A stretch of 64,000 bases of DNA from Amphiscolops sp. MND2022 (Eukaryota), in assembly GCA_964187785.1 (NCBI GenBank), contig OZ076415.1:57474001-57538000 (forward strand). Reading direction: 5' to 3'. The notes beneath the pieces were generated by a model, which did not search any database, was not told the DNA's origin, and was given only the letters and a program-made list of their open reading frames with translations. Below, one piece after another: positions 1-24,338 of this stretch; position 1 is the stretch's first letter; the number at the start of each line of letters is the position of its first letter. Made by a program: the position numbers and the translations under genes.

Positions 1-96
1 GAAAACCTACTGTACTTCATCAAAAACAATTTCAACGGAAAAAAATCAATTGAACGAAAACAAATTCAGACAAATAGACACAAAAAAAGAAATTCG

Positions 97-152
97 ACAA
101 GTTACAGAGTATAATGGGAATGGATTTAGTAGAGCGCCTGGGTGTAGCGAAG
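97..152 (+). pseudogene. Inverted fragment homologous to exon 1 of the BEN-domain gene
   Basis: ACAAGTTACAGAGTATAATGGGAATGGATTTAGTAGAGCGCCTGGGTGTAGCGAAG closely matches the reverse complement of 20293-20348. It translates KLQSIMGMDLVERLGVAK versus KSQSIVG*DLVERIGVAK. Confidence 0.75.
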
Positions 153-207
153 ACAATTTTTTGCCAACTCAGTCAAGGTTCTTAAGGCCAAACTAATTTT
201 CGGTCGT

Positions 208-1125
208 AGCTAGAACTGCGGTCATTTCTGAAGCACTCCAAATGCAACGATGACGAAAACCACCATGACTTGGAGATTCTGAAACAGAACAGTTCCTTGC
301 ACATTTGATCTATTTCTACGAAACAGGATAAAAGCAAAATTCTCATTTTCAAACATTTCGAAGGCATCGGGCCAGGATACGATGTGAAACCTAATCTCTG
401 CATTTTCAGATGAAAATTGCAATCAAAGCGAAAAACAGGTTTCAATAACCAAAGAAAAACATCTTCCAGTCTTCCAGGCAACGAAGTTTTTTGAGGAGTT
501 TTTGAAATGTGCTCAGAAACAGCTTCAAAGTCATGAAAAAGAAAAAACCTAAACAAAAGTTTACCCAAACAGTTCTCAGATTTCAAAGCCAGAGATCTGA
601 AAGACCAGTTTGCACCTCTCAGTCGTCTAAAACATCAGCTAGAACTGCAGACACTCCTGAAGCACTCCAAATGCAAGGATGACCAGGCCTGAAAACCACC
701 ATGACTGGAAATTCTGGAACAGAACACTTTCGTGAACATTTGATCTTTCTCTAAAAACAGGACAAAAGAAAAATTCTCAAACATCTCAAAGGCATCGGCT
801 CAGCGAGGGATTTGAAATTTAGCTCGGCATTTTGCTACTCAAAATTGCAATCAAAAAAGCGAAAAAAAGAGTAAAAACGATAAAAACATCTTCAAATCTT
901 CCAGAAAACGAACTTTTTAGAGTTTTGGAAATGCGCTATTGAAAATTCTCATTCTCAAACATTTCGAAGGCAGCGGTTCAGGAGACGATGTAAAACTCAA
1001 TCTCGACATTTTCCTGCTGAATTTCGCATTCACAAGAAAGCGAAAAAATGGTTCAAACAACAATAAAAAGTCTTCGAATCTTGCAGAAATCAAACTTTTT
1101 GAGGAAATTTTGAAGCGCGCCCTAA
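208..1125. repeat. Diverged tandem duplication (~430-bp unit x2 plus a partial third copy)
   Basis: AGCTAGAACTGC..CTGAAGCACTCCAAATGCAA recurs at ~208 and ~637. ATTCTC..AAACAT(T/C)TC(G/A)AAGGCA recurs at ~340, ~775 and ~950. Confidence 0.75.
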
Positions 1126-1329
1126 CATGAATCAATTCTTTAAACGAACGAAGAATCAGCAACACGAACCTAATAACTACTTACTCGAATCGCAGATAGT
1201 CACTAAGAAGACTATCGGCTGCGAAGTGAGGCAAGCACTTCTTAAGGTTAGAGTCACCCAAGACCAAAACACTTGAGCTAAAGAAATTAAACTAATGTAT
1301 ATTGATATCCCGGAAGAGACACAGACGGA

Positions 1330-1745
1330 GTTATAATGCGAAAAGTATAGTTCACTGAATGTAATGTTTCACCAGAAATTCCAAGAAAACATGCGATTGG
1401 AACCAGTCTAGTGGAGGCTCGTGGCTACTTGAACAGGAAACACAGCTGTTCACCAGGGCTTGAATTGGTTGGGACTCAGATCTTATTACCACAAAATACA
1501 ACTACAGTGTCGTATGTAGAGGTCAATTCAACATACACATTGAGGATTCGCGCTTTGAGGCACCCTTCAGGGTGCCAATAGATTTTGCTGCTGACAAAAT
1601 ATGAATCAATCATGTAAACAAACTAAGAACAAGCAACGTGAACCAACTGAAAACTTACTCGGAGCGCATGAAGTCACTAAGACGATTCATCGCTTACGAA
1701 GCGCGGCAAGAAACCTCTGTAGACTAGAGTCACCCAAGTTATCAG
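1330..1745 (-). pseudogene. SGNH/GDSL hydrolase pseudogene, subunit A (representative copy; no block V found)
   Basis: LGDSS (GDS at 1734-1726), a 68-nt GTAAGT..GTCAG intron (1658-1591) at the same position as in subunit B, then KIYWHPEGCLKARILNVYVELTSTYDTVVVFCGN followed by a frameshift. Confidence 0.75.
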
Positions 1746-1792
1746 GCTAAGGAACGAACAAAAACATTCAATTAACAGATTGAATTATTCTT

Positions 1793-2363
1793 TCAAACAT
1801 TCGACAGGAATGATATACCGAGTTCAACATTGAGGTGAACACCGTCAGCTTCAAAAGGATCATATGGTTCAATTTCCGGTGGAATAACATAAGAAAGTGA
1901 GAGATGTTCATATAGAAGTGTTTTAGTGCTTTGCATCACAACCCTTTCAACATCGGGTCTTTGAAGCAAGCCAATATTATTAACAGTTGTATAAAGAATG
2001 CGAAGTTCAAGCTCAAATTTGAAATTGCAGAGGCTCGTGGCTACTTCAACAGCAGACTCGGCAGTTAACCACGGTTTGAATGTGTGGAGATTCAGATCAT
2101 TATTGCCAGAAAACACAACTACAGTCGTATGAAGAGGCCCATTCAAGATCTTTAATGAAGAATCTCGCTCTGAGGCACTTTTCAGGGTACCAATGGATAT
2201 TGCTGCTGAAACAAAGATGAATCAATTATTTAAACGAACGAAGAACCAGCAACACGAACCCACTAACCACTTACTCGAATCGCAGATAGTCACTAAGAAG
2301 ACTATCGCTTGCGAAGTGAGGCAAGCACTTCTTCAGGTTAGAGTCACCCAAGACCAAAACTCT
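1793..2363 (-). pseudogene. SGNH/GDSL hydrolase pseudogene, subunit B (representative copy; repeated in every array unit)
   Basis: Block I VLVLGDSN (GDS at 2348-2340), a 69-nt GTAAGT..TTTCAG intron (2274-2206), then IHWYPEKCLRARFFIK.LE.ASSYD, a frameshift, block III TVVVF(C/S)GNNDL and block V ADGVHLN (~1849-1832). Confidence 0.85.
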
Positions 2364-5300
2364 TGAGCTAAAGAAAATAAACTAATGTATATTGATATCC
2401 CGGAAGAGACACAGACGGAGTTATAATGCGAAAATATTAGTTACTGAATGTAATGTTTCACCTGAAATTCCAAGAAAACATGAGATTGGAACCAGTCTAG
2501 TGGAGGCTCGTGGCTACTGGAACAGGAAACACAGCAGTTCACCAGGGCTTGAATTGGTTGGGCCTCAGATCTTATTACCACGAAATACAACAACAGTGTC
2601 GTATGTAGAGGTCAATCCAAAATACACATTGAGGATTCGCGCTTTGAGGTAGCCTTCAGGGTGCCAATAGATTTTGCTGCTGACAAAATATGAATCAATC
2701 ATGTAAACAAACTAAGAAAAAGCAACGTGATCCAACTGAGAACTCACTCGGAGCGCATGAAGTTACTAAGACGATTCATCGCTTACGAAGCGCGGCAAGG
2801 AACCTCTGTAGACTAGTGTCACCCAAGTTATCAAGCTAAGGAACGAACAAAAACATTCAATTAACAGATTGAATTATTCTTTCAAACATTCGACAGGAAT
2901 GATATATACCGAGTTCAACATTGAGGTGAACACCGTCAGCTTCAAAATGATCATATGGTTCAATTTCCTGGGGACTAACATAAGAAAGTGAGAGATGTTC
3001 ATATAGAAGTGTTTTAGTGCTTTGCATCACAACCCTTTCAACATCGGGTCTTGGAAGCAAGCCAATATTTTTAACAGTTGTATAAAGATTGCGAAGTTCA
3101 AGCTCAATTTTGAAATTGCAGAGGCTCGTAGCTACTTCAACAGCAGACTCGGCAATTAACCACGGTTTGAATGTGTGGAGATTCAGATCATTATTGCCAC
3201 AAAACACAACTACAGTCGTATGAAGAGGCCAATTCAAGATACTTAATGAAGAATCTCGCTCTGAGGCACTTTTCAAGGTACCAATGGATATTGCTGCTGA
3301 AAAAAAAATGAATCAATTATTTAAACGAACGAAGAATCAGCAACACGAACCTACTAACCACTTACTCGAATCGCAGATAGTCACTAAGAAGACTATCGCT
3401 TGCGAAGTGAGGCAAGCACTTCTTCAGGTTAGAGTCACCCAAGACCAAAACACTTGAGCTAAAGAAAATAAACTAATGTATATTGATATCCCGGAAGAGA
3501 CACAGACGGAGTTATAATGCGAAAAGTTTAGTTACTGAATGTAATGTTTCACCAGAAATTCCAAGAAAACATGAGATTGGAACCAGTCTAGTTGAGGCTC
3601 GTGGCTACTTGAACAGGAAACACAACAGTTCACCAGGGCTTGAATTGGTTGGTCCTCCGATCTTATTACCACAAAATACAACTAAGTGTCGTATGTAGAG
3701 GTCAATCCAACATACACATTGAGGATTCGCGCTTTGAGGCACCCTTCAGGGTGCCAATAGATTTTGCTGCTGACAAAATATGAATCAATCATGTAAACAA
3801 ACTAAGAACAAGCAACGTGAACCAACTGAAAACTTACTCGGAGCGCATGAAGTTACTACGACGATTCATCGCTTACGAAGCGCGGCAAGGAACCTCTGTA
3901 GACTAGAGTCACCCAACTTATCAGGCTAGGGAACGAACAAAAACTTTCAATTAACAGATTGGATTATTCTTTCAAACATTCGACAGGAATGATATATACC
4001 GAGTTCAACATTGAGGTGAACACCGTCAGCCTCAAAAGGATCATATGGATCAATATCCTGGGGACTAACATAAGAAAGTGAGAGATGTTCATATAGAAGT
4101 GTTTTAGTGCTTTGCATCACAACCCTTTCAACATCGGGTCTTGGAAGCAAGCCAATATTTTTAACAGTTGTATAAAGATTGCGAAGTTCAAGCTCAATTT
4201 TGAAGTTGCAGAGGCTCGTGGCTACTTCAACAGCAGACTCGGCAGTTAACCACGGTTCGAATGTGTGGAGATTCAGATCATTATTGCCACAAAACACAAC
4301 TACAGTTGTATGAAGAGGCCAAATCAAGATACTTAATGAAGAATCTCGCTCTGAGGCACTTTTCAGGGTACCAATGAATATTGCTGCTGAAAAAAGATGA
4401 ATCAATTATTTAAACGAACGAAGAACCAGCAACACGAACCTACTAACCACTTACTCGAATCGCAGATAGTCACTAAGAAGACTATCGCTTGCGAAGTGAG
4501 GCAAGCACTTCTTCAGGTTAGAGTCACCCAAGACCAAACACTTGAGCTAAAGAAAATAAACTAATGTATATTGATATCCCGGAATAGACACAGACGGAGT
4601 TATAATGCGAAAAGTTTAGTTACTGAATGTAATGTTTCACCAGAAATTCCAAGAAAACATGAGATTGGAACCAGTCTAGTTGAGGCTCGTGGCTACTTGA
4701 ACAGGAAACAGCAGTTCACCAGGGCTTGAATTGGTTGGTCCTCAGATCTTATTACCACAAAATACAACTAAGTGTCGTATGTAGAGGTCAATCCAACATA
4801 CACATTGAGGATTCGCGCTTTGAGGCACCCTTCAGGGTGCCAATAGATTTTGCTGCTGACAAAATATGAATCAATCATGTAAACAAACTAAGAACAAGCA
4901 ACGTGAACCAACTGAAAACTTACTCGGAGCGCATGAAGTTACTACGACGATTCATCGCTTACGAAGCGCGGCAAGGAACCTCTGTAGACTAGAGTCACCC
5001 AAGTTATCAGGCTAAGGAACGAACAAAAACTTTCAATTAACAGATTGGATTATTCTTTCAAACATTCGACAGGAATGATATATACCGAGTTCAACATTGA
5101 GGTGAACACCGTCAGCCTCAAAAGGATCATATGGATCAATATCCTGGGGACTAACATAAGAAAGTAAGAGATGTTCATATAGAGTGTTTTAGTGCTTTGC
5201 ATCACAACCCTTTCAACATCGGGTCTTGGAAGCAAGCCAATATTTTTAACAGTTGTATAAAGATTGCGAAGTTCAAGCTCAATTTTGAAGTTGCAGAGGC

Positions 5301-8300
5301 TCGTGGCTACTTCAACAGCAGACTCGGCAGTTAACCACGGTTCGAATGTGTGGAGATTCAGATCATTATTGCCACAAAACACAACTACAGTTGTATGAAG
5401 AGGCCAAATCAAGATACTTAATGAAGAATCTCGCTCTGAGGCACTTTTCAGGGTACCAATGAATCTTGCTGCTGAAAAAAGATGAATCAATTATTTAAAC
5501 GAACGAAGAACCAGCAACACGAACCTACTAACCACTTACTCGAATCGCAGATAGTCACTAAGAAGACTATCGCTTGCGAAGTGAGGCAAGCACTTCTTCA
5601 GGTTAGAGTCACCCAAGACCAAACACTTGAGCTAAAGAAAATAAACTAATGTATATTGACATCCCGGAATAGACACAGACGGAGTTATAATGCGAAAAGT
5701 TTAGTTACTGAATGTAATGTTTCACCAGAAATTCCAAGAAAACATGAGATTGGAACCAGTCTAGTTGAGGCTCGTGGCTACTTGAACAGGAAACAGCAAT
5801 ACACCAGGGCTTGAATTGGTTGGTCCTCAGATCTTATTTACCACAAAATACAACTAAGTGTCGTATGTAGAGGTCAATCCAACATACACATTGAGGATTC
5901 GCGCTTTGAGGCACCCTTCAGGGTGCCAATAGATTTTGCTGCTGACAAAATATGAATCAATCATGTAAACAAACTAAGAACAAGCAACGTGAACCAACTG
6001 AAAACTTACTCGGAGCGCATGAAGTTACTACGACGATTCATCGCTTACGAAGCGCGGCAAGGAACCTCTGTAGACTAGAGTCACCCAAGTTATCAGGCTA
6101 AGGAACGAACAAAAACTTTCAATTAACAGATTGGATTATTCTTTCAAACATTCGACAGGAATGATATATACCGAGTTCAACATTGAGGTGAACACCGTCA
6201 GCCTCAAAAGGATCATATGGATCAATATCCTGGGGACTAACATAAGAAAGTAAGAGATGTTCATATAGAGTGTTTTAGTGCTTTGCATCACAACCCTTTC
6301 AACATCGGGTCTTGGAAGCAAGCCAATATTTTTAACAGTTGTATAAAGATTGCGAAGTTCAAGCTCAATTTTGAAGTTGCAGAGGCTCGTGGCTACTTCA
6401 ACAGCAGACTCGGCAGTTAACCACGGTTCGAATGTGTGGAGATTCAGATCATTATTGCCACAAAACACAACTACAGTTGTATGAAGAGGCCAATTCAAGA
6501 TACTTAATGAAGAATCTCGCTCTGAGGCACTTTTCAGGGTACCAATGAATATTGCTGCTGAAAAAAAGATGAATCAATTATTTAAACGAACGAAGAACCA
6601 GCAACACGAACCTACTAACCACTTACTCGAATCGCAGATAGTCACTAAGAAGACTATCGCTTGCGAAGTGAGGCAAGCACTTCTTCAGGTTAGAGTCACC
6701 CAAGACCAAAACACTTGAGCTAAAGAAAATAAACTAATGTATATATCGATATCCCGGAAGAGACACAGACGGAGTTATAATGCGAAATGTTGAGTTACCG
6801 AATGTAATGTTTCACCAGAAATCCCAAGAAAACATGAGATTGGAACCAGTCTAGTGGAGGCTCGTGGCTACTTGAACAGGAAACACGGCAGTTCACCAGG
6901 GCTTGAATTGGTTGGGCCTCAGATCTTCTTACCACAAAATACAACTACAGTGTCGTATATAGACGTCAATCCAACATACACATTGAGGATTCGCGCTTTG
7001 AGGCACCCTTCAGGGTGCCAATAGATTTTGCTGCTGACAAAATATGAATCAATCATGTAAACAAACTAAGAACAAGCAACGTGAACCAACTGAAAACTTA
7101 CTCGGTTCGCATGAAGTTACTAAGACGATTCATCGCTTACGAAGCGCAGCAAGCAACCTCTGTAGACTAGAGTCACCCAAGTTATCATTCTAAGGAACGA
7201 AGAAAAACATTCAATTAACAGATTGAATTATTCTTTCAAACATTCGACAGGAATGATATATACCGAGTTCAACATTGAGGTGAACACCGTCAGCTTCAAA
7301 AGGATCATATGGTTCAATTTCCTGAAGACTAACATAAGAAAGTGAGAGATGTTCATATAGAAGTGTTTTAGTGCTTTGCATCACAACCGTATCAACATCG
7401 GGTCTTGGAAGGAAGCAAGCTAATATTTTTAGCAGTTGTATAAAGATTGCGAAGTTCAAGCTCAATTTTGAAATAGCAGAGGCTCGTGGCTACTTCAACA
7501 GCAGACTCGGCAGTTAACCACGGTTTGAATGTGTGGAGATTCAGATCATCATTGCCACAAAACACAACTACAGTCGTATGAAGAGGCCAATTCAAGATAC
7601 TTAATGAAGAATCTCGCTCTCAGGCGCTTTTCAGGGTACCAATGGATATGGCTGCTGAAAAAAAATATGAATCAATTATTTAAACGAACGAAGAACCAGC
7701 AACACGAACATACTAACCAATTACTCGAATCGCAGATGGTCACTAAGAAGACTATCGCTTGCGAAGTGAGGCAAGCACTTCTTCAGGTTAGCGTCACCCA
7801 AGACCAAAACACTTGAGCTAACGAAAATGAACTAATGTATATTGATATCCCGGAAGAGACACAGAGGGAGTTATAATGCGAAAAGTTTAGTTACTGAATG
7901 TAATGTTTCACCAGAAATTCCAAGAAAACATGAGATTGGAACCAGTCTAGTGGAGGCTCGTGGCTACTTGAACAGGAAACACAGCAATTCACCAGGGCTT
8001 GAATTGGTTGAGCCTCAGATCTTATTACCACAGAATACAACTACAGTGTCGTATGTAGAGGTCAATCCAACATACACATTGAGGATTCGCGCTTTGAGGC
8101 ACCCTTCAGGGTGCCAATAGATTTTGCCGCTGACAAATAATGAATCAATCATGTAAACAAACTAAGAACAAGCAACGTGAACCAACTGAAAACCTACTCG
8201 GAGTGCATGAAGTCACTAAGACGATTCATCGCTTACGAAGCGCAGCAAGCAACCTCTGTAGACTAGAGTCACCCAAGTTATCAGGCTAAGGAACGAAGAA

Positions 8301-11300
8301 AAACATTCAATTAACAGATTGAATTATTCTTTCAAACATTCGACAGGGATGATATATACCGAGTTCAACATTGAGGTGAACACCGTCAGCTTCAAAAGGA
8401 TCATATGGTTCAATTTCCTGAAGACTAACATAAGAAAGTGAGAGATGTTCATATAGAAGTGTTTTAGTGCTTTGCATCACAACCGTATCAACATCGGGTC
8501 TTGGAAGGAAGCAAGCTAATATTTTTAGCAGTTGTATAAAGATTGCGAAGTTCAAGCTCAATTTTGAAATTGCAGAGGCTCGTGGCTACTTCAACAGCAG
8601 ACTCGGCAGTTAACCACGGTTTGAATGTGTGGAGATTCAGATCATTATTGCCACAAAACACAACTACAGTCGTATGAAGAGGCCAATTCAAGATACTTAA
8701 TGAAGAATCTCGCTCTCAGGCGCTTTTCAGGGTACCAATGGATATGGCTGCTGAAAAAAAATATGAATCAATTATTTAAACGAACGAAGAACCAGCAACA
8801 CGAACATACTAACCAATTACTCGAATCGCAGATATTCACTAAGAAGACTATCGCTTGCGAAGTGAGGCAAGCACTTCTTCAGGTTAGAGTCACCCAAGAC
8901 CAAAACACTTGAGCTAAAGAAAATAAACTAATGTATATATCGATATCCCGGAAGAGACACAGACGGAGTTATAATGCGAAATGTTGAGTTACCGAATGTA
9001 ATGTTTCACCAGAAATCCCAAGAAAACATGAGATTGGAACCAGTCTAGTGGAGGCTCGTGGCTACTTGAACAGGAAACACGGCAGTTCACCAGGGCTTGA
9101 ATTGGTTGGGCCTCAGATCTTCTTACCACAAAATACAACTACAGTGTCGTATATAGACGTCAATCCAACATACACATTGAGGATTCGCGCTTTGAGGCAC
9201 CCTTCAGGGTGCCAATAGATTTTGCTGCTGACAAAATATGAATCAATCATGTAAACAAACTAAGAACAAGCAACGTGAACCAACTGAAAACTTACTCGGT
9301 TCGCATGAAGTTACTAAGACGATTCATCGCTTACGAAGCGCAGCAAGCAACCTCTGTAGACTAGAGTCACCCAAGTTATCATTCTAAGGAACGAAGAAAA
9401 ACATTCAATTAACAGATTGAATTATTCTTTCAAACATTCGACAGGAATGATATATACCGAGTTCAACATTGAGGTGAACACCGTCAGCTTCAAAAGGATC
9501 ATATGGTTCAATTTCCTGAAGACTAACATAAGAAAGTGAGAGATGTTCATATAGAAGTGTTTTAGTGCTTTGCATCACAACCGTATCAACATCGGGTCTT
9601 GGAAGGAAGCAAGCTAATATTTTTAGCAGTTGTATAAAGATTGCGAAGTTCAAGCTCAATTTTGAAATAGCAGAGGCTCGTGGCTACTTCAACAGCAGAC
9701 TCGGCAGTTAACCACGGTTTGAATGTGTGGAGATTCAGATCATTATTGCCACAAAACACAACTACAGTCGTATGAAGAGGCCAATTCAAGATACTTAATG
9801 AAGAATCTCGCTCTCAGGCGCTTTTCAGGGTACCAATGGATATGGCTGCTGAAAAAAAATATGAATCAATTATTTAAACGAACGAAGAACCAGCAACACG
9901 AACATACTAACCAATTACTCGAATCGCAGATGGTCACTAAGAAGACTATCGCTTGCGAAGTGAGGCAAGCACTTCTTCAGGTTAGCGTCACCCAAGACCA
10001 AAACACTTGAGCTAACGAAAATGAACTAATGTATATTGATATCCCGGAAGAGACACAGAGGGAGTTATAATGCGAAAAGTTTAGTTACTGAATGTAATGT
10101 TTCACCAGAAATTCCAAGAAAACATGAGATTGGAACCAGTCTAGTGGAGGCTCGTGGCTACTTGAACAGGAAACACAGCAATTCACCAGGGCTTGAATTG
10201 GTTGAGCCTCAGATCTTATTACCACAGAATACAACTACAGTGTCGTATGTAGAGGTCAATCCAACATACACATTGAGGATTCGCGCTTTGAGGCACCCTT
10301 CAGGGTGCCAATAGATTTTGCCGCTGACAAATAATGAATCAATCATGTAAACAAACTAAGAACAAGCAACGTGAACCAACTGAAAACCTACTCGGAGTGC
10401 ATGAAGTCACTAAGACGATTCATCGCTTACGAAGCGCAGCAAGCAACCTCTGTAGACTAGAGTCACCCAAGTTATCAGGCTAAGGAACGAAGAAAAACAT
10501 TCAATTAACAGATTGAATTATTCTTTCAAACATTCGACAGGGATGATATATACCGAGTTCAACATTGAGGTGAACACCGTCAGCTTCAAAAGGATCATAT
10601 GGTTCAATTTCCTGAAGACTAACATAAGAAAGTGAGAGATGTTCATATAGAAGTGTTTTAGTGCTTTGCATCACAACCGTATCAACATCGGGTCTTGGAA
10701 GGAAGCAAGCTAATATTTTTAGCAGTTGTATAAAGATTGCGAAGTTCAAGCTCAATTTTGAAATTGCAGAGGCTCGTGGCTACTTCAACAGCAGACTCGG
10801 CAGTTAACCACGGTTTGAATGTGTGGAGATTCAGATCATTATTGCCACAAAACACAACTACAGTCGTATGAAGAGGCCAATTCAAGATACTTAATGAAGA
10901 ATCTCGCTCTCAGGCGCTTTTCAGGGTACCAATGGATATGGCTGCTGAAAAAAATATGAATCAATTATTTAAACGAACGAAGAACCAGCAACACGAACAT
11001 ACTAACCAATTACTCGAATCGCAGATATTCACTAAGAAGACTATCGCTTGCGAAGTGAGGCAAGCACTTCTTCAGGTTAGAGTCACCCAAGACCAAAACA
11101 CTTGAGCTAACGAAAATAAACTAATGTATATTGATATCCCGGAAGAGACACAGAGGGAGTTATAATGCGAAAAGTTTAGTTACTGAATGTAATGTTTCAC
11201 CAGAAATTCCAAGAAAACATGAGATTGGAACCAGTCTAGTGGAGGCTCGTGGCTACTTGAACAGGAAACACAGCAATTCACCAGGGCTTGAATTGGTTGA

Positions 11301-14047
11301 GCCTCAGATCTTATTACCACAGAATACAACTACAGTGTCGTATGTAGAGGTCAATCCAACATACACATTGAGGATTCGCGCTTTGAGGCACCCTTCAGGG
11401 TGCCAATAGATTTTGCCGCTGACAAATAATGAATCAATCATGTAAACAAACTAAGAACAAGCAACGTGAACCAACTGAAAACCTACTCGGAGTGCATGAA
11501 GTCACTAAGACGATTCATCGCTTACGAAGCGCAGCAAGCAACCTCTGTAGACTAGAGTCACCCAAGTTATCAGGCTAAGGAACGAAGAAAAACATTCAAT
11601 TAACAGATTGAATTATTCTTTCAAACTTTCGACAGGGATGATATATACCGAGTTCAACATTGAGGTGAACACCGTCAGCTTCAAAAGGATCATATGGTTC
11701 AATTTCCTGGGGACTAACATATGAAAGTGAGAGATGTTCATATAGAAGTGTTTTAGTGCTTTGCATCACAACTGTATCAACATCGGGTCTTGGAAGGAAG
11801 CAAGCTAGTATTTTTAAGTTGTATAAAGATTGCGAAGTTCAAGCTCAATTTTGAAATTGCAGAGGCTCGTGGCTACTTCAACAGCAGACTCGGCAGTTAA
11901 CCACGGTTCGAATGTGTGGAGATTCAGATCATTATTGCCACAAAACACAACTACAGTTGTATGAAGAGGCCAAATCAAGATACTTAATGAAGAATCTCGC
12001 TCTGAGGCACTTTTCAGGGTACCAATGAATATTGCTGCTGAAAAAAGATGAATCAATTATTTAAACGAACGAAGAACCAGCAACACGAACCTACTAACCA
12101 CTTACTCGAATCGCAGATAGTCACTAAGAAGACTATCGCTTGCGAAGTGAGGCAAGCACTTCTTCAGGTTAGAGTCACCCAAGACCAAAACACTTGAGCT
12201 AAAGAAAATAAACTAATGTATATTGATATCCCGGAAGAGACACAGACGGAGTTATAATGCGAAAAGTTTAGTTACTGAATGTAATGTTTCACCAGAAATT
12301 CCAAGAAAACATGAGATTGGAACCAGTCTAGTTGAGGCTCGTGGCTACTTGAACAGGAAACAGCAGTTCACCAGGGCTTGAATTGGTTGGTCCTCAGATC
12401 TTATTACCACAAAATACAACTAAGTGTCGTATGTAGAGGTCAATCCAACATACACATTGAGGATTCGCGCTTTGAGGCACCCTTCAGGGTGCCAATAGAT
12501 TTTGCTGCTGACAAAATATGAATCAATCATGTAAACAAACTAAGAACAAGCAACGTGAACCAACTGAAAACTTACTCGGAGCGCATGAAGTTACTACGAC
12601 GATTCATCGCTTACGAAGCGCGGCAAGGAACCTCTGTAGACTAGAGTCACCCAAGTTATCAGGCTAAGGAACGAACAAAAACTTTCAATTAACAGATTGG
12701 ATTATTCTTTCAAACATTCGACAGGAATGATATATACCGAGTTCAACATTGAGGTGAACACCGTCAGCCTCAAAAGGATCATATGGATCAATATCCTGGG
12801 GACTAACATAAGAAAGTAAGAGATATTCATATAGAGTGTTTTAGTGCTTTGCATCACAACCCTTTCAACATCGGGTCTTGGAAGCAAGCCAATATTTTTA
12901 ACAGTTGTATAAAGATTGCGAAGTTCAAGCTCAATTTTGAAGTTGCAGAGGCTCGTGGCTACTTCAACAGCAGACTCGGCAGTTAACCACGGTTCGAATG
13001 TGTGGAGATTCAGATCATTATTGCCACAAAACACAACTACAGTTGTATGAAGAGGCCAATTCAAGATACTTAATGAAGAATCTCGCTCTGAGGCACTTTT
13101 CAGGGTACCAATGAATATTGCTGCTGAAAAAAAGATGAATCAATTATTTAAACGAACGAAGAACCAGCAACACGAACATAGTAACCACTTACTCGAATCG
13201 CTGATTGTCACTAAGAAGACTATCGCTTGCGAAGTGAGGCAAGCACTTCTTCAGGTTAGAGTCACCCAAGACCAAAACACTTGAGCTAACGAAAATAAAC
13301 TAATGTATATTGATATCCCGGAAGAGACACAGACGGAGTTATAATGCGAAAAGTTTAGTTACTGAATGTAATGTTTCACCAGAAATTCCAAGAAAACATG
13401 AGATTGGAACCAGTCTAGTGGAGGCTCGTGGCTACTTGAACAGGAAACACATCAGTTCACCAGGGCTTGAATTGGTTGAGCCTCAGATCTTATTACCACA
13501 AAATACAACTACAGTGTCGTATGTAGAGGTCAATCCAACATACACATTGAGGATTCGCGCTTTGAGGCACCCTTCAGGGTGCCAATAGATTTTGCCGCTG
13601 ACAAATAATGAATCAATCATGTAAACAAACTAAGAACAAGCAACGTGAACCAACTGAAAACCTACTCGGAGCGCATGAAGTCACTAAGACTATTCATCGC
13701 TTACGAAGCGCAGCAAGCAACCTCTGTAGACTAGAGTCACCCAAGTTATCAGGCTAAGGAACGAAGAAAAACATTCAATTAACAGATTGAATTATTCTTT
13801 CAAACATTCGACAGGGATGATATATACCGAGTTCAACATTGAGGTGAACACCGTCAGCTTCAAAAGGATCATATGGTTCAATTTCCGGGGGACTAACATA
13901 AGAAAGTGAGAGATGTTCATATAAAAGTGTTTCAGTGCTTTGCATCACAACCCTTTCAACATCGGGTCTTGGAAGCAAGCCAATATTTTCAACAGTTGTA
14001 TAAAGATTGCGAAGTTCAAGCTCACTTTTGAAACTGCAGAGGCTCGG

Positions 14048-14665
14048 TGAAATCAGCTTTTAGCAGTGGGTTGAAAGCGTTGTGACTCAAACATTTATTT
14101 CAGAACAATCCACTTGAGGTATCTAGAAAAAACGTTACGACATCCCATAAAGCTTTTTGGGTAAATCGCCCTCTGTGGCTACTTTCAGGGCACCAATGGA
14201 TAGTGCTGTTGAAAAATACAAGCTCGGTTTATCCACTAAACAAACGCTGAAGAAAAAACGAACCAAATACTTACTCAAGGAGCGAATTCAAGTAGAGTTT
14301 CTGTTCAGGTTACAGGTAGCGAAATCAAAACCAGTGCGAATTTTGATGACAAGAATTTTAGGAACAAGATGGGCAACAAAGGTAAGCAAGTCCGAATAGA
14401 ACCAAACATTAAATAAAAAAGTGCTAGGGCAAGTAATATTCTCGGCGAGGGGGCGACATAAATGGGAAAATATTGTGCATGCACAGCCAGTGCTGTGCTC
14501 CACGTGGTTCAATTGTTCGAAGCCTTCGTTCATTAGGCTCACCACTGCTTTCTCCAGAGTTCCTGACAAGAACATTAGTTGGGTAGCCATTAGGTCATCG
14601 ACAGTCAACAAAGAGTAAGTCATCAAGCTGTGAGATCTCATAATAAAATTCTTCGGAAGAAGCAA
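14048..14665 (-). pseudogene. Third, unamplified SGNH paralogue (N-terminal half) preceded by a Cys/His-containing reading frame
   Basis: FATCNLNR aligns with LGDSNLKK. It has the same 69-nt GTAAGT..CAACAG intron (14274-14206), then TIHWCPES...LWDVVTFF, and runs directly into the C-terminal SGNH half of the last array unit at ~14047. Confidence 0.6.
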
Positions 14666-14780
14666 CGTAGATCAATGGCTTCTTCGAGCGGTAATGCCTA
14701 ACTATAGCAGTAGTGGCATCGTTGACATCTTGGTGATAATCAACTAAAAGTAAAAAGTCGCCCGACATTGTTTGAGTAAT

Positions 14781-16952
14781 TCATTCGCTCCAATTCTGAA
14801 ATAACGGTGTGTAAGCCATAGACGCGAAAACCTTTGTACTAGGGATGAGATAATGCCGACTGCGAAGATGTCCCGTGCCGCATTCGATAAGAGAAAACCG
14901 ACAGTCCTCAGCTACAGAAGTGAAGCGGTCCTCGAAATTTTTCTCTTCTGAGAATGCAACAGCGTGTTTGTCGCAAAAGTAAATTATCCACAACATGACT
15001 CAAACTTTTAACCGTTCCTTGGACTGAATTCAGTAAAAAATGATTGGCGGACTCGAATCCAAAAGCCGAATTCCTCCAGATTGGCCCTTTACGTCTAACT
15101 TGATCGCAAAGATGTCTCAGAGAATGAAAATTAAAACTTTGTGAATCCTTGCCATAAAGATTCACGAAGTCTAGCTGGAACCTTTCGATCAGGTTTGGGG
15201 CTTCGTTTATATTTTCCGTTGAAACCTTTCAGAAATAACAGCCTTTTAGCGACAGACAATTGATTACACGATTGATGATACTTTTCTTGAACGAAATCTT
15301 TCAAGCAGTAACTGCCGAAGTAAAAAAGAAAAAGCTTGAAATCTCGAGCTTTCCAAAATAATATTTCTGACAGCAACTTGGGACGGCCCTGTGCACATCG
15401 AGGTGCTTTGACACCTTTCAACCGTTTCCCCATTGATGTAGTGTTCCGTTTTGCAGTCGAAGCTAATAGCGCTGTGATGATTGATTTGGCACAACCCAAA
15501 AACACCTGGTGCATAGCATCGATTGGAACATCGTCACGTATGCTGAACAGTTCGTCTATGAACCAGCGTCCTTTAATACCTCTGACTATTTCATTTTTGC
15601 CTTCAGCAACACTAGCATCTTTCAAAAGTTCATCTTTGTGGCGTTGAATGATTTCCTCATCACAAGGATATAAGTGACGATGATTCTCATGAAAACCACG
15701 AGTGTAGCAATAGATGCACCTATAAAGAAGTTTTCTAAACTCGTTGTGTTGGCGGTTTTTCTTTCACGCAAAACCAATTGACAAAAAAGGTGTCAGAGAA
15801 AAACGGGTCATATGTTTGAGAGAAAAAAAGGTCAGTTTAGGCACAGTGCCAAATGTTCAAGCAGAAATTTTGCTTTACAGTGGAGTTGTTTATATTTCGA
15901 TGTTTCCCAACGAATGTCGTGATCTGAGACACTACCCTTTCTGAGCTTGCAGATGACAGCCAACCCGAGCATTCCACATTATTTTTTAAGAGAAAGTCGG
16001 TCAGTTGAAAGTTAAATTTATATAGATAACTTACCCATAATATCCGTTGAACTGGACAACATTGAGTGAAGGTGCTTTCGCTATCATGTCCTATATGAAA
16101 TCTTTCACTTCAACGTTGAAATGTTTCGACAACAAACTGCTGTATACCCCGAGGGAAATGCCACTCAATTCTCGTCTTATTATTGGATCAACATTCGAAA
16201 AGTTGGGTTTTGTGCTGCCTTTCCACAATGCGACCTGCATCATAATGTGTGAAGCTGTTCTCCGGATACGTGGCATGTTATCAATAAGAACCCAGAAAGG
16301 CCAAAACACTTTTTTCGATGATCGAAACGGTGTCGCACCATCAGTGTTTAGGAAGATAAAGGTTTTGTCACCACACAAAACATCTTCATTTCGCTCAATA
16401 TTTATCATTTCCCCCCTTGGACTTTAGATCTCGAAACCATCTGCGACGTTCACAGACCTTCGATGACACATGTCTGACAGGTCATTATTAGGTTTTGGGA
16501 TAACTAACTTGAGTTCACAGAGCTCTCGAACAGCACTATCTGCGAGTCTATGACGTACCGCGAAGTCGCAAAGTTTTTTTCCGCAAATGTTCAACCGTAA
16601 TGTCTGACTTTTCAAACAGTACCAGCTCATCGGAAGAACTGTCGAAAATGTTCTGACGGTCCGTTTCCTGACAGTTCGTTTCCTGTGGTATAGTGAACTC
16701 CAAAAAACTGGAGAGGTGCAACGGTGTTGAACATCGAGCGTTTGGTATCGGGTTAAAGGCTGCACTGCTAGAAGATGTTGGTTCTTCACTTTCACAAAAT
16801 TCGTTATCGCTCAACTCACCAATGGGTATTTCAATCTCGTCGGAAGAAACCTGATCGGAGTCCGAACTGTTTTTACAAAATAATGTATTGCTCGAAGTCG
16901 ACTGTCTAAGTTTTTTACCACGACTAGTAGCATATCGTCCGGAAACACGCAT
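14781..16952 (-). pseudogene. CACTA/EnSpm-type (Tnp2/Transposase_21-like) DDE transposase, multiply frameshifted
   Basis: Motifs occur in canonical order: FAVRHRLADSAVREL; IFLNTDGATPFRSSKKVFWPFW..VALWKGSTKP; CIYCYTRG..YP; RGIKG..VPIDAMHQVFLGCAK; WKARDFKLFLFYFG; LYGKDSQSFNFHSLRHLCDQVRRKGPIW..SAFGFES. Confidence 0.88.
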
Positions 16953-17099
16953 TAAAGAATGATCTTGTTGTTGTTCTAGTGATGTGAAAGTATTCGAAAG
17001 TCGTTTTCTGAACGTCCTAGACTTCCGTTTTGCTGCCGCGGAACTTTCAATTCGGAAGGTCCCTTTCCAGCTAAATTTTTCGCTTCTGACCTTGTTCGA

Positions 17100-17675
17100 C
17101 TACAGAGGACTAACGTGCCCTGGCCATGAAATTGGACATTGGGACAGACAGTTGATATTGTATTCGCCGAAGGTACTTAAGACCGTACTTTACAGTAATT
17201 TCCTCACTTTTTGTGAAAGAACGCAGTGTTTTCGAAGTTATTATATTATTCTCGCTGCGTACATAGAGACAATTGGGGAAGCACGAGTGGTTAACGAAAG
17301 ACAACGGTCCTAGCATTAATTCTTCGCCTCTCCTCAGGAAAACTGACACATTAGCATCCTCTGGAAGATCTTCCTTCTCTTGAAATTCTGCCAAAATCCC
17401 TTTAACAGGAATTTCAGTTCTTGCATGAATGTCAGACAAAGCGAAAACCCCTAAATTAGTAAACTTTTGCGGTGGTAAGTAATCGACATGTAGAATTTCG
17501 AAACTTGGTAAGGTCTTTTGTATTCTTGCCTCAAATTGTTTATCAGAGTGGAATTTATATTCTGACACCTCCCAGGCTCCAGAACTTTGTTCGACTTGAC
17601 GACATCCGAATCAATTGCTTCTCTAGTCGCCACTGCATCTGCCAGTGCTCATTGCCTCCAAGTGAAGGTGCTCAT
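17100..17675 (-). pseudogene. Suv4-20/KMT5B-like SET-domain histone methyltransferase, intronless, frameshifted
   Basis: FEIL..GILAEF..LMLGPLSFVNHSCFPNC..TLRSFTKSEEITVKYG. After a 1-nt shift it reads FGEYNINCLSQC (post-SET), and upstream is DAVATREAID..SNKV. This parallels the SUV4-20 pattern LWLGPAAFINHDCRPNC..EEISCYYG..FFGENNEFCEC. Confidence 0.85.
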
Positions 17676-17827
17676 TGTGAACCAACAAACAAGAAACTGA
17701 AAACTCATTGTTCAAAATAATTTAGATGCCCTAAAATTCTTTAAAAGTTACCTACTTTCAAAGTACATGATGGACAGTAAATTAAGTTCGTAATCGCCAG
17801 TACAACGAATTAGGAAGATTTTTCCCG

Positions 17828-18450
17828 GTTAAAACTTAAACTGTTAAACTGCTGAATAGTGGAAACAGAAACACCAAGTTGCTGCCCGAAAATGGAACCT
17901 GTATATTCATGTGATTTTTCATATTCCCTGATACGATATAAAGAACATTCAATTGACAACCGGGTAATGATGTGACTTGAGTGTTGACCCGACTCAATGC
18001 ATATTAGCAAATTATGTAAATGATACGAAAAGCGTTTTTCAACCAATGCAGCCAGTGCTGCACTGATATCTCGATAAGTCCAACACTAACAATTGACGAT
18101 ATGTGTGACATTTTCATGCCAATGAGCACACCGACATTGCCCCATTTTACCCTCTATCCGTATCATTAAGGGAAACATTTGTTCCATTAGTTCAATCTGA
18201 ACAGAGAGGCACTTATGCTAGGAAATATCTCATTTAGCCGCAACTGTTGCGACATGAAGACGAAAACACTTGACATTATCACCAAAGTATCTAGAGCCGT
18301 GATTTACTGTTCTTCATGTTTTGAAAAAAAAACTGGGGAACGCCACCTGTCAATCAAGGAAAGTTTTGGAGGCAATTTCAAAATTTTTACTGGTATTCTG
18401 CTCTGAGGCAGCGCTGGTTCTCATCAATAGAAAGTGCTAGCGTTCGATGA
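17828..18450 (-). pseudogene. Partial degenerate duplicate of the BEN-domain gene (end of exon 1, coiled-coil exon, following intron)
   Basis: 17828-18210 aligns with 19511-19910. TTCAG|IELMEQMFPLMIRIEGK corresponds to TTCCAG|VELMEQMLRSMMRMENK. Confidence 0.7.
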
Positions 18451-18770
18451 AACTAACAAATGGTACAAGTAAGATGAAGTAGCACATTGAACTTTTATTC
18501 GCTATTTCAGCGAACGCATGAGAAGAAATCAATTATCAAGGTACATGTTAGACGTTCAGTTAGGTTGGTTTTGATCAGTAGGACGAGATAAGAACTAGTT
18601 TATAAACAACTAGGATCGAAAATTTAGTTTTCATTTCCCCGAAAAATCAAAAGAGCAATGTTAAGTTTTGAGGCTTGCAACCAAATTTGGAGTATTAAAA
18701 GTCTTTTGGATGTACGACTTCAGATGTTATTTTGGAAAAAAAGTTCTGCGGGTGGGGCGTCACCTTTTTT

Positions 18771-20488
18771 TTACATCGTTTCACTGTTGTTTGTTGGCGG
18801 AGTGGACAGGGTCGGTTTCTTCTTCGGTAATTTGGTCCTGTTCTTCATTTCCGTCCCAAGCCCGTTCACAATGTTGCGGGACTTCACATAGCACCCGGAA
18901 TAAAGGCAAACGCACTCTGAACAAAAAATGGAAATAGTTTTTCTGTCAAAGCAAAACGACTGTTAGGTATGAACAAAGCTCTCGATCGAGGAGGCTGGAA
19001 TCATCTAACCCCTGAATAACGCTTTTCGCGTTGGGGTCATTGGACTGCGAGGCACATCCATGAACTCTAAGTCCTTGCCGGGGGACATGATGTTAATAAT
19101 CAGTTCTTTCCTGGACCACAGCTTTCGAGCAATGTTTCTCCCGTACAAAGTGGGAACATCACCAGGACAATCCAGGAGATCGTCTCCGTTGAACATTTTG
19201 CGAACACGCTCCCCGATGGATGCAGGAGTATAATGGTGGTTTTTTTGCATCCACTCCATTATCAGAGCTTGAGTTTTCGCCTAACAAGAAACTTATACAT
19301 AACATTTATTCAACATAACACCTTGTTACAGCGATAGCGACAAGTTCTGCAATGAAGCACTTAAAGCTTATCTCAACTTTCACTCTCAGAAAGACCAGTC
19401 TTGCACTGAGAAAGGTACTTTTATCAACCTAACCAGGAACTCACAGATGAGGCAATAAGTCTGTTAATACTCAAGGGACAACCTTAAAAACCTTTACAAA
19501 AAATTGAAAGGTTAAAACTTAAAGTGTTAAACTGCTGAATGGTGGAAACCGAAACACCAAATTGAAGCCCGAACATGGAACCTGTATATTCATGTGATTT
19601 TTCAAATTCCCTGATACCTTACAAAGAACTTTTAACTGACAACCGGGTTATGATGTATGTCGTGAGTGTTGACTAGACGTAATGCATATTAACAAAATAG
19701 GTAAATGACATGTGAAACGTTTTTCAACCAATGCAGCCAGTGCTGCGTTGATATCTCGATAAGTCCTACACTAACAATTAACGATATGTCTTTGACATTC
19801 TTACGCCAACGAGTATCGCAGGCGTCATGAGCACATCGCCATTTTGTTCTCCATCCGCATCATAGAGCGAAGCATTTGTTCCATCAATTCAACCTGGAAA
19901 AGCAATTGTGCGAAGAAATACCCTAATTAGACTTCAGTTGAATTTCAATCGCATACCACTTTAGAATTGTCCACAGCAGTTGCTTGCGGAGTAGTCAAAG
20001 TCGTATCCAAACACTTCCGTTTGGGTTCGGGCTCCAAGATATCATCCAACTCATTATCTGAGAATGAGTGGTCTGCTTGATGCTGTGACAGGGGACTCTG
20101 GAATTTATCAGTCTCTACTTGGCGATCGGCCCCGAGTAAAATGTTGGAGAGGTTGATATCCTCACCCGATTCAAACCTCTCCATGAGTTCGGAGGCTTCT
20201 TTTTTCTTGCGTTTGACGTCGGCATTGGTTCCAACGAACCAAACTTTTCCCGCGAATATTCCTTTCTTACAACGAATGTTCAATTGATCCGACTTCGCTA
20301 CACCTATGCGCTCTACTAAATCCTATCCCACGATACTCTGTGACTTGTAGTCGAGCGTCACAAAGGTATCATCTTGCGGGAATCGAACGATGACGGCTCG
20401 GTCTTTATCACGGAACTCTTGGAAGCCGCGGTTCGGGCGAGTCAAGCCGAAATAAGGTTTCAGTGTTGTAATCGATAATGCTTTTCAT
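18771..20488 (-). pseudogene. Spliced BEN/DUF4806-like domain gene (transposon accessory protein)
   Basis: Exons ~20488-19957, ~19890-19805, 19280-19010 and 18916-18771 have GT-AG borders. The spliced C-terminus reads PTLYGRNIARKLWSRKELIINIMSPGK..PRSPMTPTRKALFR|ECVCLYSGCYVKSRNIVNGLGTEMKNR. Exon 1 has an in-frame TAG and a frameshift. Confidence 0.65.
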
Positions 20489-21790
20489 CTCAAGGAAAAC
20501 TTTTCAGGACTTTCAGTTGTTTCCAAAAGAAATTGCTTTGGTACCCACAACAAACTTGAAATCCAGATACTGGAAACATTTCTAGTATCAATAAAATATT
20601 CTCCTGAGCGGCACAAAGTTTCTGCTTTAGGGGAACAAAAACCATTACCTTCAATACAGTGATAATATCAGACAATGAATCAAATAACTGCAAATAAGGG
20701 TGCATTTCGTGCTCGGAAACAGCTTCAACAGTTCGGGTAGAGCGTTTTGGGCCACATGGGATTGCGTTTTTTGAACCTCAGCCCTCTTGAGAAAAGCGCA
20801 ATTTCGACTATAACGTCGAAATTCTGATATTGCGCACCAATTTCCATCCTCTGATTCATCCTTAGTAAAATTCAATATACTTCGGAAATACCGGCAAAAG
20901 TTCGGATATAGAGTGCTGGGACAAATGGGAGCACTTGTTTTCGAACCTCCGCCGTAGTGAAACGTATTTTACTTTGAATATAACGTCAACAATTTGCATA
21001 TAGCATTTCTAGTTTTTGAACATCCTTAGAATACCTAGGATACCTTTTTGGTGAAACGGGTCAAAAATTCGGATTCTATTGGATAATGTTATTGGAGGAT
21101 AAAACCTTTGATAAAACCTATAATTGAAGGATAAAATCTATAATAACGGAACTCTTGGAAGCCGCGGTTCGGACGAGTCAAGCTGAAATTAGGTTTCAGT
21201 GTTGTAATTGATAATGCTTTTCATCTCAAGGAAAACTTTTCAGGACTTTCAGTTGTTTACAAAAGAAATTGCTTTGGTACCCACAACAAACTTGAAATCC
21301 AGATACTTGAAACGTTTCTAGTATCAATAAAATATTCCCCTGAGCGGCACAAAGTTTCTGCTTTGGGGGAACAAAAACCATTACCTTCAATACAGTGATA
21401 ATATCAGACAATGAATCAAATAACTGCAAATAAGGGTGCATTTCGTGCTCGGAAACAGTTTCAACAGTTCGGGTAGTGCGTTTTGGGCCACATGGGATTG
21501 CGTTTTTTGAACCTCGGCCCTCCTGAGAAAAGCGCAATTTCGACTATAACGTCGAAATTTTGATATTGCGCACCAATTTCGATCCTCCGATTCATCCTTA
21601 GTAAAATTCAATATACTTCGGAAATACCTGTAAAAGTTCGTATATAGAGTGCTGGGACAAATGGGAACACTTGTTTTCGAGCGTCCGCCGTAGTGAAACG
21701 TTTTTTACTTTGAATATACGTCAACAATTTGGATATAGCATTTCTAGTTTTTTGAACATCCACCTTTTTAGTGAAACGTGTCAAAAATTC
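20413..21790. repeat. ~736-bp tandem duplication covering the 5' region of the BEN gene
   Basis: GGAACTCTTGGAAGCCGCGGTTCGG occurs at ~20413 and ~21149, followed by ~600 bp of high identity. Paired ORFs 20490/21226 and 20651/21387 are near-identical. Confidence 0.92.
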
Positions 21791-22319
21791 GGATTCTATT
21801 GGATAAAGTTATTGGAGGATAAAACCTATAATTAGATGAGAAATGAGAATTTTGTAGTCTCAGTGCCAAAAGAAATCGAATGAAATGACCTCTTAGTCTA
21901 GTCCGGTATTGTATGTTACGCTAAAAAAGGAACTACTCCTTTAGTTGAGTTCCCTGGGCCAAATGGTAATTTGACACTCTTAAATATTCGTAGAACTTTG
22001 TTAAACTAATTTGGTCAGTTCGTGTGGGTTGAAAAAAGGTCACTATTAGAGGTGCACCGGACAGGAAAATTTGTGTCCGGCTGGATAACCGGACAGGACT
22101 GATTGAAGCTGGATACCGGCCGGACCGGACATTTTCCTCAACTATAACCCATGACAGGCTGTTTTTAGATTTGGCAACGAGTATGACGAAACGCAAAGAA
22201 AACGTTTGCTCTATACTATTGAACATTTTTTCTTCAAAATCAATATGCCCAAAATATTTACCGTTGGTGAAATGGTCAAAAAAGGCAATAATCGGGACAA
22301 GCTAATGAGTATAGGAGAC

Positions 22320-23400: not shown

Positions 23401-23695
23401 AAAATGTCTTTAGGGTTTACCGACTTAAAATAGAAACTTGGAGAAATGAGAAAAATCAGCTATTCAATCAGGGAATATTCGGAAAGTCTCGCTTCCGTTC
23501 GGGTTGCGAAGACATTTTGGCAGAAATGTTGCAGTTTTGTGAGAAAAGTTTCCTTCGATCAAACACTTTCTGAAAAACGAAACATTGCTTGGATCAATAA
23601 TAATGATATATTTGTTGGCCCCCGTTTTTTGATTTCAGAGACATCAAGTCAATATTTTGTGAAAATGTGTCCAATGGTATTTAATATTGTCTTAT

Positions 23696-24338
23696 AATTC
23701 CACAAATAGTGATTTTAGACGTTATTCCACAAAATTAGTGATTTTAGACGTTATTTCAAAATATGGGTATTGTAGTCGTTATTCCAGTACAATGTACAAT
23801 ACAATCTTTTTAGATCTTATTCTACCCGAATAGATTTATTTTAGAAGTAATTCCACAAATATAGTGATTTTAGACGTTATTCCCCAAAAAAGCGATTTTA
23901 GACGTTATTCCGCAAAAACTGATTTTGGACGTTGTTCTACCAGACTATGGGTATTTTAGTCGTTATTCCAGAGAATTAGTGTTTTTAGATCTTTCTCGAC
24001 CCAAATATATTTATTTTAGACGTTATTCCACCAATATAGTGATTTTAGACGTTATTCCCCAAAAAAGCGATTTAGACGTTATTCCGTAAAAACAGTGGTT
24101 TTAGACGTTATTCTACCAGATTATGCGTATTTTAGTCGTTATTCCAGAAAAATACAGTGTTTTTAGATCTTATTCGACCTAAATACTGTTATTTTAGACG
24201 TTATTCCACAAACATAGTGATTTTAGACCTTATTCCTCAAATACAGTGATTTTAGACGTTAATCCACAAAATTAGTGTTTTAGAAGACGTTATTTCATCA
24301 AACTTTGGGTACTTTAGTCGTTAATCTAGTGAAATACA
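23696..24338. repeat. Minisatellite, ~30-bp unit (consensus ATAGTGATTTTAGACGTTATTCCACAAA), about 21 copies
   Basis: TTTTAG(A/T)CGTTATTCC is directly repeated throughout the interval. Confidence 0.93.

Follow-up and report, generated by a model that had tools for sequence, protein, structure and literature searches.

A tandem array of broken SGNH esterase modules, probably amplified within a dead Mirage/CACTA-like transposon of Amphiscolops sp.

Results

Anatomy of the array

The window analysed here, a stretch of 64,000 nucleotides from Amphiscolops sp. MND2022 (contig OZ076415.1, positions 57,474,001 to 57,538,000 of the forward strand), carries an array of broken genes that resemble SGNH (GDSL) hydrolases, lying within what is probably a dead DNA transposon. 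An earlier note, made from the letters of this DNA, had placed the array at 1130-14047 and described it as a satellite built from two intron-containing hydrolase genes. Those limits proved right to within a few bases: the array spans 1126-14053, its coding sense is that of the minus strand, and its units, about 1090 bp long, follow one another head to tail. Related loci are referred to throughout as L001-L004 (on four further contigs of ENA assembly ERZ25074608, to which the window's contig also belongs), L005, L006 and L007 (from a second ENA sample, ERZ25071359) and L008 (the window's own contig, in reverse orientation).

A direct-repeat analysis gave a tandem period of 1085-1098 bp in 12 copies; Tandem Repeats Finder (TRF), run on window positions 1-20000, returned nothing relevant for the array because this period exceeds its longest period, 500. 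The motif GAGTCACCCAAG, which the earlier note had read as the reverse complement of Leu-Gly-Asp-Ser and reported twice per unit, has 20 exact occurrences in the window against 0 expected for a 12-mer. With one-base variants included, there are 24 such L-G-D-S (block I) sites in the array, 12 in each of two kinds of subunit, A and B, in agreement with that reading. When the array was divided at two acceptor-like anchors, the minus strand resolved into 12 A subunits (468-473 nt) and 11 full B subunits (617-625 nt), each unit consisting of an A of about 470 nt and then a B of about 620 nt. GDS, the intron and GNND are found in both, and DGVH in B. A and B are 78.6% identical, and the units are 94-100% identical to one another (mean about 96.5%), forming a defined monomer repeated head to tail, as in a satellite.

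Read in the coding direction, the array opens with a partial, 5'-truncated esterase module, B0 (13760-14053), which covers residues ~55-145 and has its counterpart in the first, partial module of L002 (8405-8753). It is followed on the same strand by unit 1 (12670-13759, with A1 at 13759-13289 and B1 at 13288-12670) and by units 2 (11581-12669), 3 (10486-11580), 4 (9390-10485), 5 (8292-9389), 6 (7196-8291), 7 (6104-7195), 8 (5018-6103), 9 (3931-5017), 10 (2842-3930), 11 (1753-2841) and 12 (1126-1752), each made up of the A and B of that number. The longest shadow open reading frame (ORF) of the array, 3947-4405, lies inside unit 9, and in unit 12 the last B consists of exon 1 and most of the intron, being cut at about 1126-1130.

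Three pairs of subunits are 100% identical (A4 and A6, A5 and A7, B3 and B5) and B4 is close to B6, a pattern that points to the recent duplication of a 2-unit block of 2.19 kb; units 4 and 5 constitute this higher-order repeat. B1 and A2, in turn, are similar to B7-B9 and A8-A9, a likeness that fits unequal exchange inside the array. The ORFs of the array were seen on one contig only, and an exact A-specific 25-mer had no match in JGI metagenome contigs.

Lesions, reading frame and intron

Alignment of all subunits showed that a 1-nt loss in GNNDL (GGTAATAA-GATCTG) is common to 12/12 A and that a 2-nt loss in YDTV (TACGACTGTAG) is common to 11/11 full B. A and B were therefore both dead before the amplification, as the earlier note had proposed from the units it compared. 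Its lesion inventory needs extending: the two shared losses stand, and A is more damaged than was described. Exon 1 of A exceeds that of B by 2 nt and meets a TGA in frame, and the end of A, after ..ATSL, is joined to the sequence that precedes exon 1 of B. One more base is lost in A2, A8, A9 and A10 (GACACT-TAG), and A8 has an extra A at another place. Further frame-breaking indels (+4, -1, -2), private or shared by a subfamily, are found in B1-B8 and B11 (B2, for example, has an additional -2 and +4 indel), B9 has an additional 1-nt loss in exon 1 upstream of GDS, and in B10 the shared 2-nt deletion is the sole lesion. An open spliced frame is retained by none of the units; intact units, which the note had named as a finding that would speak for a functional gene array, do not occur in the window. 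The frame IHWYPEK..YDTVVVFCGNNDL, which it had taken as ancestral while dismissing that of the ORF track as a shadow, is indeed the open frame of intact copies elsewhere.

The GTAAGT..CAG intron reported for both subunits was recovered at an identical position in each, with a length of 68 nt in every A and 68-70 nt in B. Its donor is mutated to GTAGGT in A1, A3, A4 and A6, to GTGAGT in A11 and to GTAATT in B3-B6. In intact copies (n = 8) exon 1 has a constant 93 nt, the intron 64-67 nt, and exon 2 is open for 143-146 codons; the intron reads GTAAGT..(T)nCAG, a TAA stands in frame at the donor, and the frame is continuous only after removal of the intron. The spliced product is colinear across the junction with natural intronless relatives. 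Judged by these canonical signals, the frame, the length variation and the colinearity with intronless relatives, the predicted esterase intron is real. Two distant relatives, P0007 and P0008, start with ..WFFSS, the translation of the acceptor tract, and the intron is therefore apparently common to them. Exon 1 itself starts at an acceptor-like ..YYYAG, and an ATG three codons before GDS is present in L002 and L003.

Identity of the modules

Structure models were made from intact exon-2 pieces and from natural intronless relatives, not from the broken copies of the window. A profile of the intact exon-2 translations, searched against 1.84 billion representatives, retrieved 37 proteins, down to E 1e-13, among them intronless forms of 177-183 amino acids (aa) with GDSN, G(L/F)RA, GNND and D..H in that order. 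GDSN (block I) is conserved in those intact relatives whose N-terminus is included. An alignment of 30 sequences has G(L/F)RA and near-invariant GNND columns at blocks II and III, and at block V an invariant His, with Asp in most sequences; in the window, GNNDL is readable in B and DGVHLN in all B units.

The AlphaFold model of one relative, P0022 (pLDDT 93.7, pTM 0.90), gave 157 Foldseek matches in the PDB at E<=1e-3, with probability 1.00 and TM scores of up to 0.80. The 50 matches listed of these 157 are GDSL/SGNH acylhydrolases, platelet-activating factor acetylhydrolases (PAF-AH), TesA, acetyl or sialate esterases, or else designed scaffolds with an alignment like theirs, and the top Swiss-Prot matches are PAF-AH Ib alpha subunits (TM 0.77, ~20% identity). 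A 146-aa exon-2 piece of the window's own family, taken from L002, was modelled at pLDDT 92.8 and returned the same match list. At the level of sequence, a profile of the 30 sequences found PAF-AH Ib among PDB sequences at E 0.007 and left the ORF1 esterase of ZfL2-1 (4c1b) unmatched even at E<=10; a profile of six exon-2 sequences gave no meaningful PDB sequence match, and Pfam gave no SGNH match on the window's longest shadow ORFs. Pfam Lipase_GDSL_2 was matched below threshold by 6 of 10 relatives, at 14-21 bits against a cut-off of 32.9, and a language-model search returned GDSL clusters. Sequence models are weak by themselves. The SGNH assignment made in the note stands when checked by sequence profiles and by structure prediction on intact relatives: the modules are predicted to be SGNH/GDSL hydrolase sequences of a very divergent branch.

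The enclosing transposon

The array forms part of a longer element. From 20694 to 2 on the minus strand the window is colinear with L002 212-17203 at 72-87% identity, and proteins like the B-unit ORF are encoded on four further contigs of the same ENA assembly. The element comprises, in order, 5' ORFs, a SET-domain ORF running into the transposase, a second transposase ORF, the esterase modules, a 435-bp repeat and a terminal region. In the window, all on the minus strand, the 5' part lies at 17821-20694 (colinear with L002 212-3786), a degenerate SET-domain/transposase gene at 14516-17675, with a SET-domain ORF remnant at 17110-17568 (Pfam SET, E 1.8e-10), about two copies of the 435-bp 3' tandem repeat at 208-937, and the 3' terminal region at 1-292, its terminus, ..CTCGACTAGGG, falling outside the window start at L008:14681. 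A database look-up of the window ORF at 182-586 gave no record.

In L002 one continuous ORF of 551 aa (L002:4716-6371) covers the SET domain together with the transposase's N-terminal part; on its predicted translation it is a SET-transposase fusion and not a separate SET gene. Compared with the open 551-aa and 390-aa ORFs of L002, the window transposase (17675-14516) is broken by five shifts of frame and 13 or more stops, and the window's copy of the element is, to judge by its reading frames, dead. At L001:3422-5950 the L001 transposase is interrupted by an ORF of 842 aa that has RVT_1 and a region resembling an aspartyl protease and is of the long terminal repeat (LTR) retrotransposon type.

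The 3' end of the element is sharply defined (..CGACTAGGG), with differing flanks. The terminus ..GCAGATTCGACTAGGG is exactly common to L001-L004 and is followed by three or more distinct flanks (L002, L003 and L001/L004); the window contig L008 has a diverged terminus, ..GCAACCTCGACTAGGG, 276 bp beyond the window start, and yet another flank. The window and L001-L004 thus lie on five contigs with at least four different 3' flanks, the flank being identical in L001 and L004. Since distinct flanks follow a common 3' terminus, we regard these loci as separate insertions of a mobile element, present in multiple dispersed copies at different sites as a CMC transposon would be. The 5' end is undefined because similarity to L002 and L004 stops at different points (L002:212 and L004:964). 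No inverted copy of the 3' terminus was found on the 5' side, either in the window (with up to 3 mismatches) or in the loci, and there is no CCCTAG or CACTAG near the expected 5' edge. At this presumed edge, a 700-bp direct duplication (20407-21107 and 21143-21827, 93% identical) masks the 5' terminus.

The transposase of L005 carries PF06869 and PF02992 (DUF1258 and Transposase_21), as a CMC transposase should, and that of L002 is homologous to it at 30-47% identity (E 2e-27 and 3e-38). DUF1258 belongs to the Mirage group, which is close to CACTA transposases (PMC3985635).

The esterase as a gene of the element

In L005, L006 and L007 the transposase is followed, 72-292 nt downstream and on its own strand, by the esterase ORF. 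These three loci (L005:4877-8534, L006:4766-8537 and L007:3595-7196) each comprise SET, a transposase of the Transposase_21/DUF1258 type, these two domains being recorded in L005, and an intronless SGNH esterase of 177-183 aa. The same order, SET/transposase and then esterase, is also present in L002 and L003 and is kept in at least four diverged lineages, between which transposases are 30-47% and esterases 22-35% identical. A comparison of exon 2 between two intact subfamilies of the window's lineage gave a synonymous divergence (dS) of ~0.49 and a nonsynonymous divergence (dN) of ~0.13; by this estimate (dN/dS 0.27), the intact esterase copies are under purifying selection. Because its position is conserved in at least four lineages and it appears to be under such selection, the esterase would belong to the transposon's core as an accessory gene, and its intact copies have the look of a working, conserved transposon gene. 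The term cargo, used in the earlier note, is therefore misleading if taken to mean a recently captured host gene.

The transposase C-terminus, ..EGFEHN, is conserved together with the stop that follows it, and the esterase is therefore a separate ORF; in L006 and L007 it has its own ATG before GDS. Fusion of the esterase to the transposase by splicing was also considered and is ruled out by the conserved ..EGFEHN and TAA in L002, L005, L006 and L007.

Number and history of the modules

In every copy examined, the stretch that follows the transposase is prone to duplication. L002 and L003 each carry three modules, of which the last one alone is intact (in L002, the predicted spliced esterase at 10721-11317), and L001 and L004 have 3-5 modules interleaved with 435-bp repeats. 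Downstream of the modules, the 435-bp tandem repeat is present in about 13 copies in L002 (11419-17000) and is found also in L003 (10418-15578), with about 2 in the window. The adjacent module and 435-bp tandem regions of the element expand independently.

An A-like fragment before the L002 modules has the 1-nt GNNDL loss at the same site and the same tail after GAGCCTCCACTAG, and both A's 1-nt deletion and its ..ATSL breakpoint are common to L002 and L003. It follows that the common ancestor of these copies already carried A as a dead, partial duplicate. B's 2-nt deletion is confined to the window copy, because the modules of L002 keep GACACTG. What had been taken for two genes is thus one gene, B, and an older 3'-truncated pseudo-copy of it, A.

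Other features of the window

An apparently intron-free host ORF at 25641-26381 (+) encodes a UBX-domain protein (Pfam UBX, E 1e-16), and another, at 29258-30346 (+), an ALYREF/THO4-like RRM protein, likewise apparently intron-free, whose best named full-length relatives come from two acoels, Convolutriloba macropyga (47%) and Symsagittifera roscoffensis (34%). By this one gene, the host is probably an acoel or something close to one. Degenerate short-period tandem repeats occupy 23690-24340, with self-matches at offsets of ~60-360 bp and 70-82% identity. A non-LTR retrotransposon remnant lies at 51532-54288 (+), where an Exo_endo_phos_2 ORF is followed by RVT_1 ORFs split by frameshifts, and a second non-LTR copy is found just left of the window (L008:18199-20459).

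Discussion

We consider it probable that the array arose by tandem amplification of a 3'-proximal region, that of the accessory gene, within one dead copy of a Mirage/CACTA-like (CMC) element more than 17 kb long. Intact elements would encode a SET-domain/transposase and then, on the same strand, a PAF-AH-like SGNH esterase of ~180 aa, with one intron of 64-70 nt in this lineage. In the ancestral layout the truncated pseudo-copy A would have stood ahead of a live gene B, and in the window's element copy B would then have lost 2 nt. The A+B dimer would have been amplified to 12 units after this knockout of B, most likely by unequal crossing-over or replication slippage. Later, small lesions would have accumulated and the 2-unit block would have been re-duplicated, the product being non-coding. 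The esterase may be enzymatically active, and the protein may serve transposition. Of the earlier description as a satellite, the tandem array holds good and the satellite status is not supported: a single locus is seen, in one degenerate element, other copies of which have 3-5 modules. The array is a copy-number expansion of a duplication-prone 3' region, and at most a proto-satellite.

Several observations weigh against this account. Neither a 5' terminus nor terminal inverted repeats nor a target-site duplication was found, and the likely placement of this >17-kb element among Mirage/CACTA-like transposons is for that reason by its transposase domain alone. Transposase_21 is itself weak in the family of the window (E 0.04-0.08 in the window and L002) and firm only in the L005 lineage. 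No module or relative reaches the Pfam gathering score for any SGNH family, in several intact copies (L001/L004), as in the modules of the window, there is no ATG directly ahead of GDS, and the copy number comes from a single assembly.

This last point bears on the explanation that the array is an assembly artefact or has a wrong copy number, near-identical modules having been over-expanded or mis-joined. The contig (ctg183565_111x) does come from a metagenome-type long-read assembly, and the identical subunit pairs described above are what such an error could produce. However, the units are up to 6% divergent from one another, their indels are structured and unit-specific, period and register are regular, and independent element copies also have 3-5 modules, so that we regard an artefact as quite unlikely. 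Still less probable is a functional tandem gene family, part of whose units would be expressed and, for example by way of alternative splicing or frameshifting, give an active SGNH esterase. GDS, GNND and DGVH can be read in B, the splice signals are intact in many units and B10 has a single lesion, but there is a frame-breaking deletion in every A and every full B, with more in most B, not one spliced frame is open, and the adjacent transposase is dead. The rival to which we would give most room, while still thinking it unlikely, is that an inert expansion was co-opted as a source of Piwi-interacting RNAs (piRNA) or small interfering RNAs (siRNA) that silence live copies of the transposon family. 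Dead multi-copy loci of transposon sequence are often small-RNA sources in animals, and the array is a dead multi-copy image, 77-87% identical, of a gene in potentially active elements. Yet Rfam gave no match at its gathering threshold across the whole window, and nothing in the sequence demands such a role.

The modules might, alternatively, go back to a non-LTR retrotransposon (CR1/L2/RTEX-type) and its ORF1 esterase, or to an SGNH gene captured by a Helitron. A Helitron-mobilised SGNH gene is said to exist in platyfish, non-LTR elements are present in the window, and SGNH esterases are known in the ORF1 of CR1, RTEX and Penelope (PMC3905857). However, the esterase follows a SET/Transposase_21-DUF1258 gene at every locus and never an endonuclease/reverse transcriptase ORF; nor does a reverse transcriptase ORF come after it, as ORF2 does in elements with an esterase ORF1. 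The sole reverse transcriptase near a module is the LTR-type insertion that interrupts the L001 transposase, the family profile reaches PAF-AH and misses the esterase of ZfL2-1, and the gene has an intron, which is unusual in a retroelement ORF. We find this origin scarcely credible. Amplification inside a dead Mirage/CACTA-like copy remains the explanation that we prefer.

The array is an ordinary kind of event, a clean case of the known process by which transposon sequence becomes tandem DNA, in which the order of events is legible from shared lesions. The more useful outcome is the element family that it reveals, with SET and an SGNH esterase that have stayed beside the transposase through deep divergence. 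The full-text literature searched, Repbase and Dfam being outside its scope, yielded no account of a DDE-type DNA transposon in which an SGNH esterase is conserved, and a DNA transposon that retains such an enzyme appears to be new. We tentatively suggest, and would not yet call it probable, that these loci represent an undescribed Mirage/CACTA-like lineage, probably of acoel worms, with a SET/transposase fusion and a stand-alone PAF-AH-like SGNH esterase under purifying selection. It would be the first esterase-keeping cut-and-paste transposon, its intron having been acquired in one sub-lineage. If true, this would be a convergent recruitment of ester hydrolysis for the propagation of mobile elements, to be set beside CR1/L2/RTEX/Penelope; if one enzyme type were independently linked to transposon classes of unrelated mechanism, that would argue for a general need of mobile elements. 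The stand-alone 180-aa esterase would also give a second, simpler test system than the ORF1 esterase.

Satellites and tandem arrays derived from CACTA-like elements have been documented, for example CficCl-61-40, from the tnp2 region of Jozin in Chenopodium (PMC7320549). As in that case, a coding piece of a CACTA-like (tnp2-type) element has become the repeating unit of an array that runs head to tail and has its start within the element. Unlike CficCl-61-40, the monomer is 1.09 kb long rather than ~40 bp and derives from an intron-bearing accessory esterase rather than the transposase, and the array is seen at one locus, with 12 copies, in an animal host.

The esterase itself has its closest parallel in the ORF1 proteins (ORF1p) of CR1, RTEX and Penelope, which have kept SGNH esterases of TAP/PAF-AH-like structure whose role is not established (PMC3905857). 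Like the ORF1p esterase of ZfL2-1 (PDB 4c1b), the protein described here is a transposon-encoded SGNH esterase of the PAF-AH/TAP type, long retained and with conserved Ser, Gly, Asn and Asp..His blocks; unlike it, it would be carried by a cut-and-paste DNA transposon and be a stand-alone protein, ~180 aa long and encoded downstream of the transposase, where that of ZfL2-1 is one domain of a coiled-coil ORF1p. With PAF-AH Ib (PAFAH1B2/B3), its best match both by structure and by PDB profile, it shares the order of the catalytic blocks, but PAF-AH Ib is the product of a host gene and is ~230 aa long, whereas the protein of the transposon is smaller, strongly diverged and present in multiple copies. 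A study of the platyfish Y chromosome reportedly describes a multicopy SGNH hydrolase gene captured and mobilised by a Helitron. There too an SGNH hydrolase gene is carried and multiplied by a DNA-level mobile element; that gene is a captured host gene, whereas here the esterase looks to be a conserved component beside a DDE-type transposase and its multiplication occurred in tandem, in situ. Finally, SET genes are present in HarbingerS and MuDR elements of oomycetes, at least as these are cited in PMC12730594. The element described here similarly encodes a SET domain, presumably acting on chromatin, but unlike in HarbingerS and MuDR this domain is predicted to be fused N-terminally to a Mirage/CACTA-type transposase ORF, with an esterase alongside.

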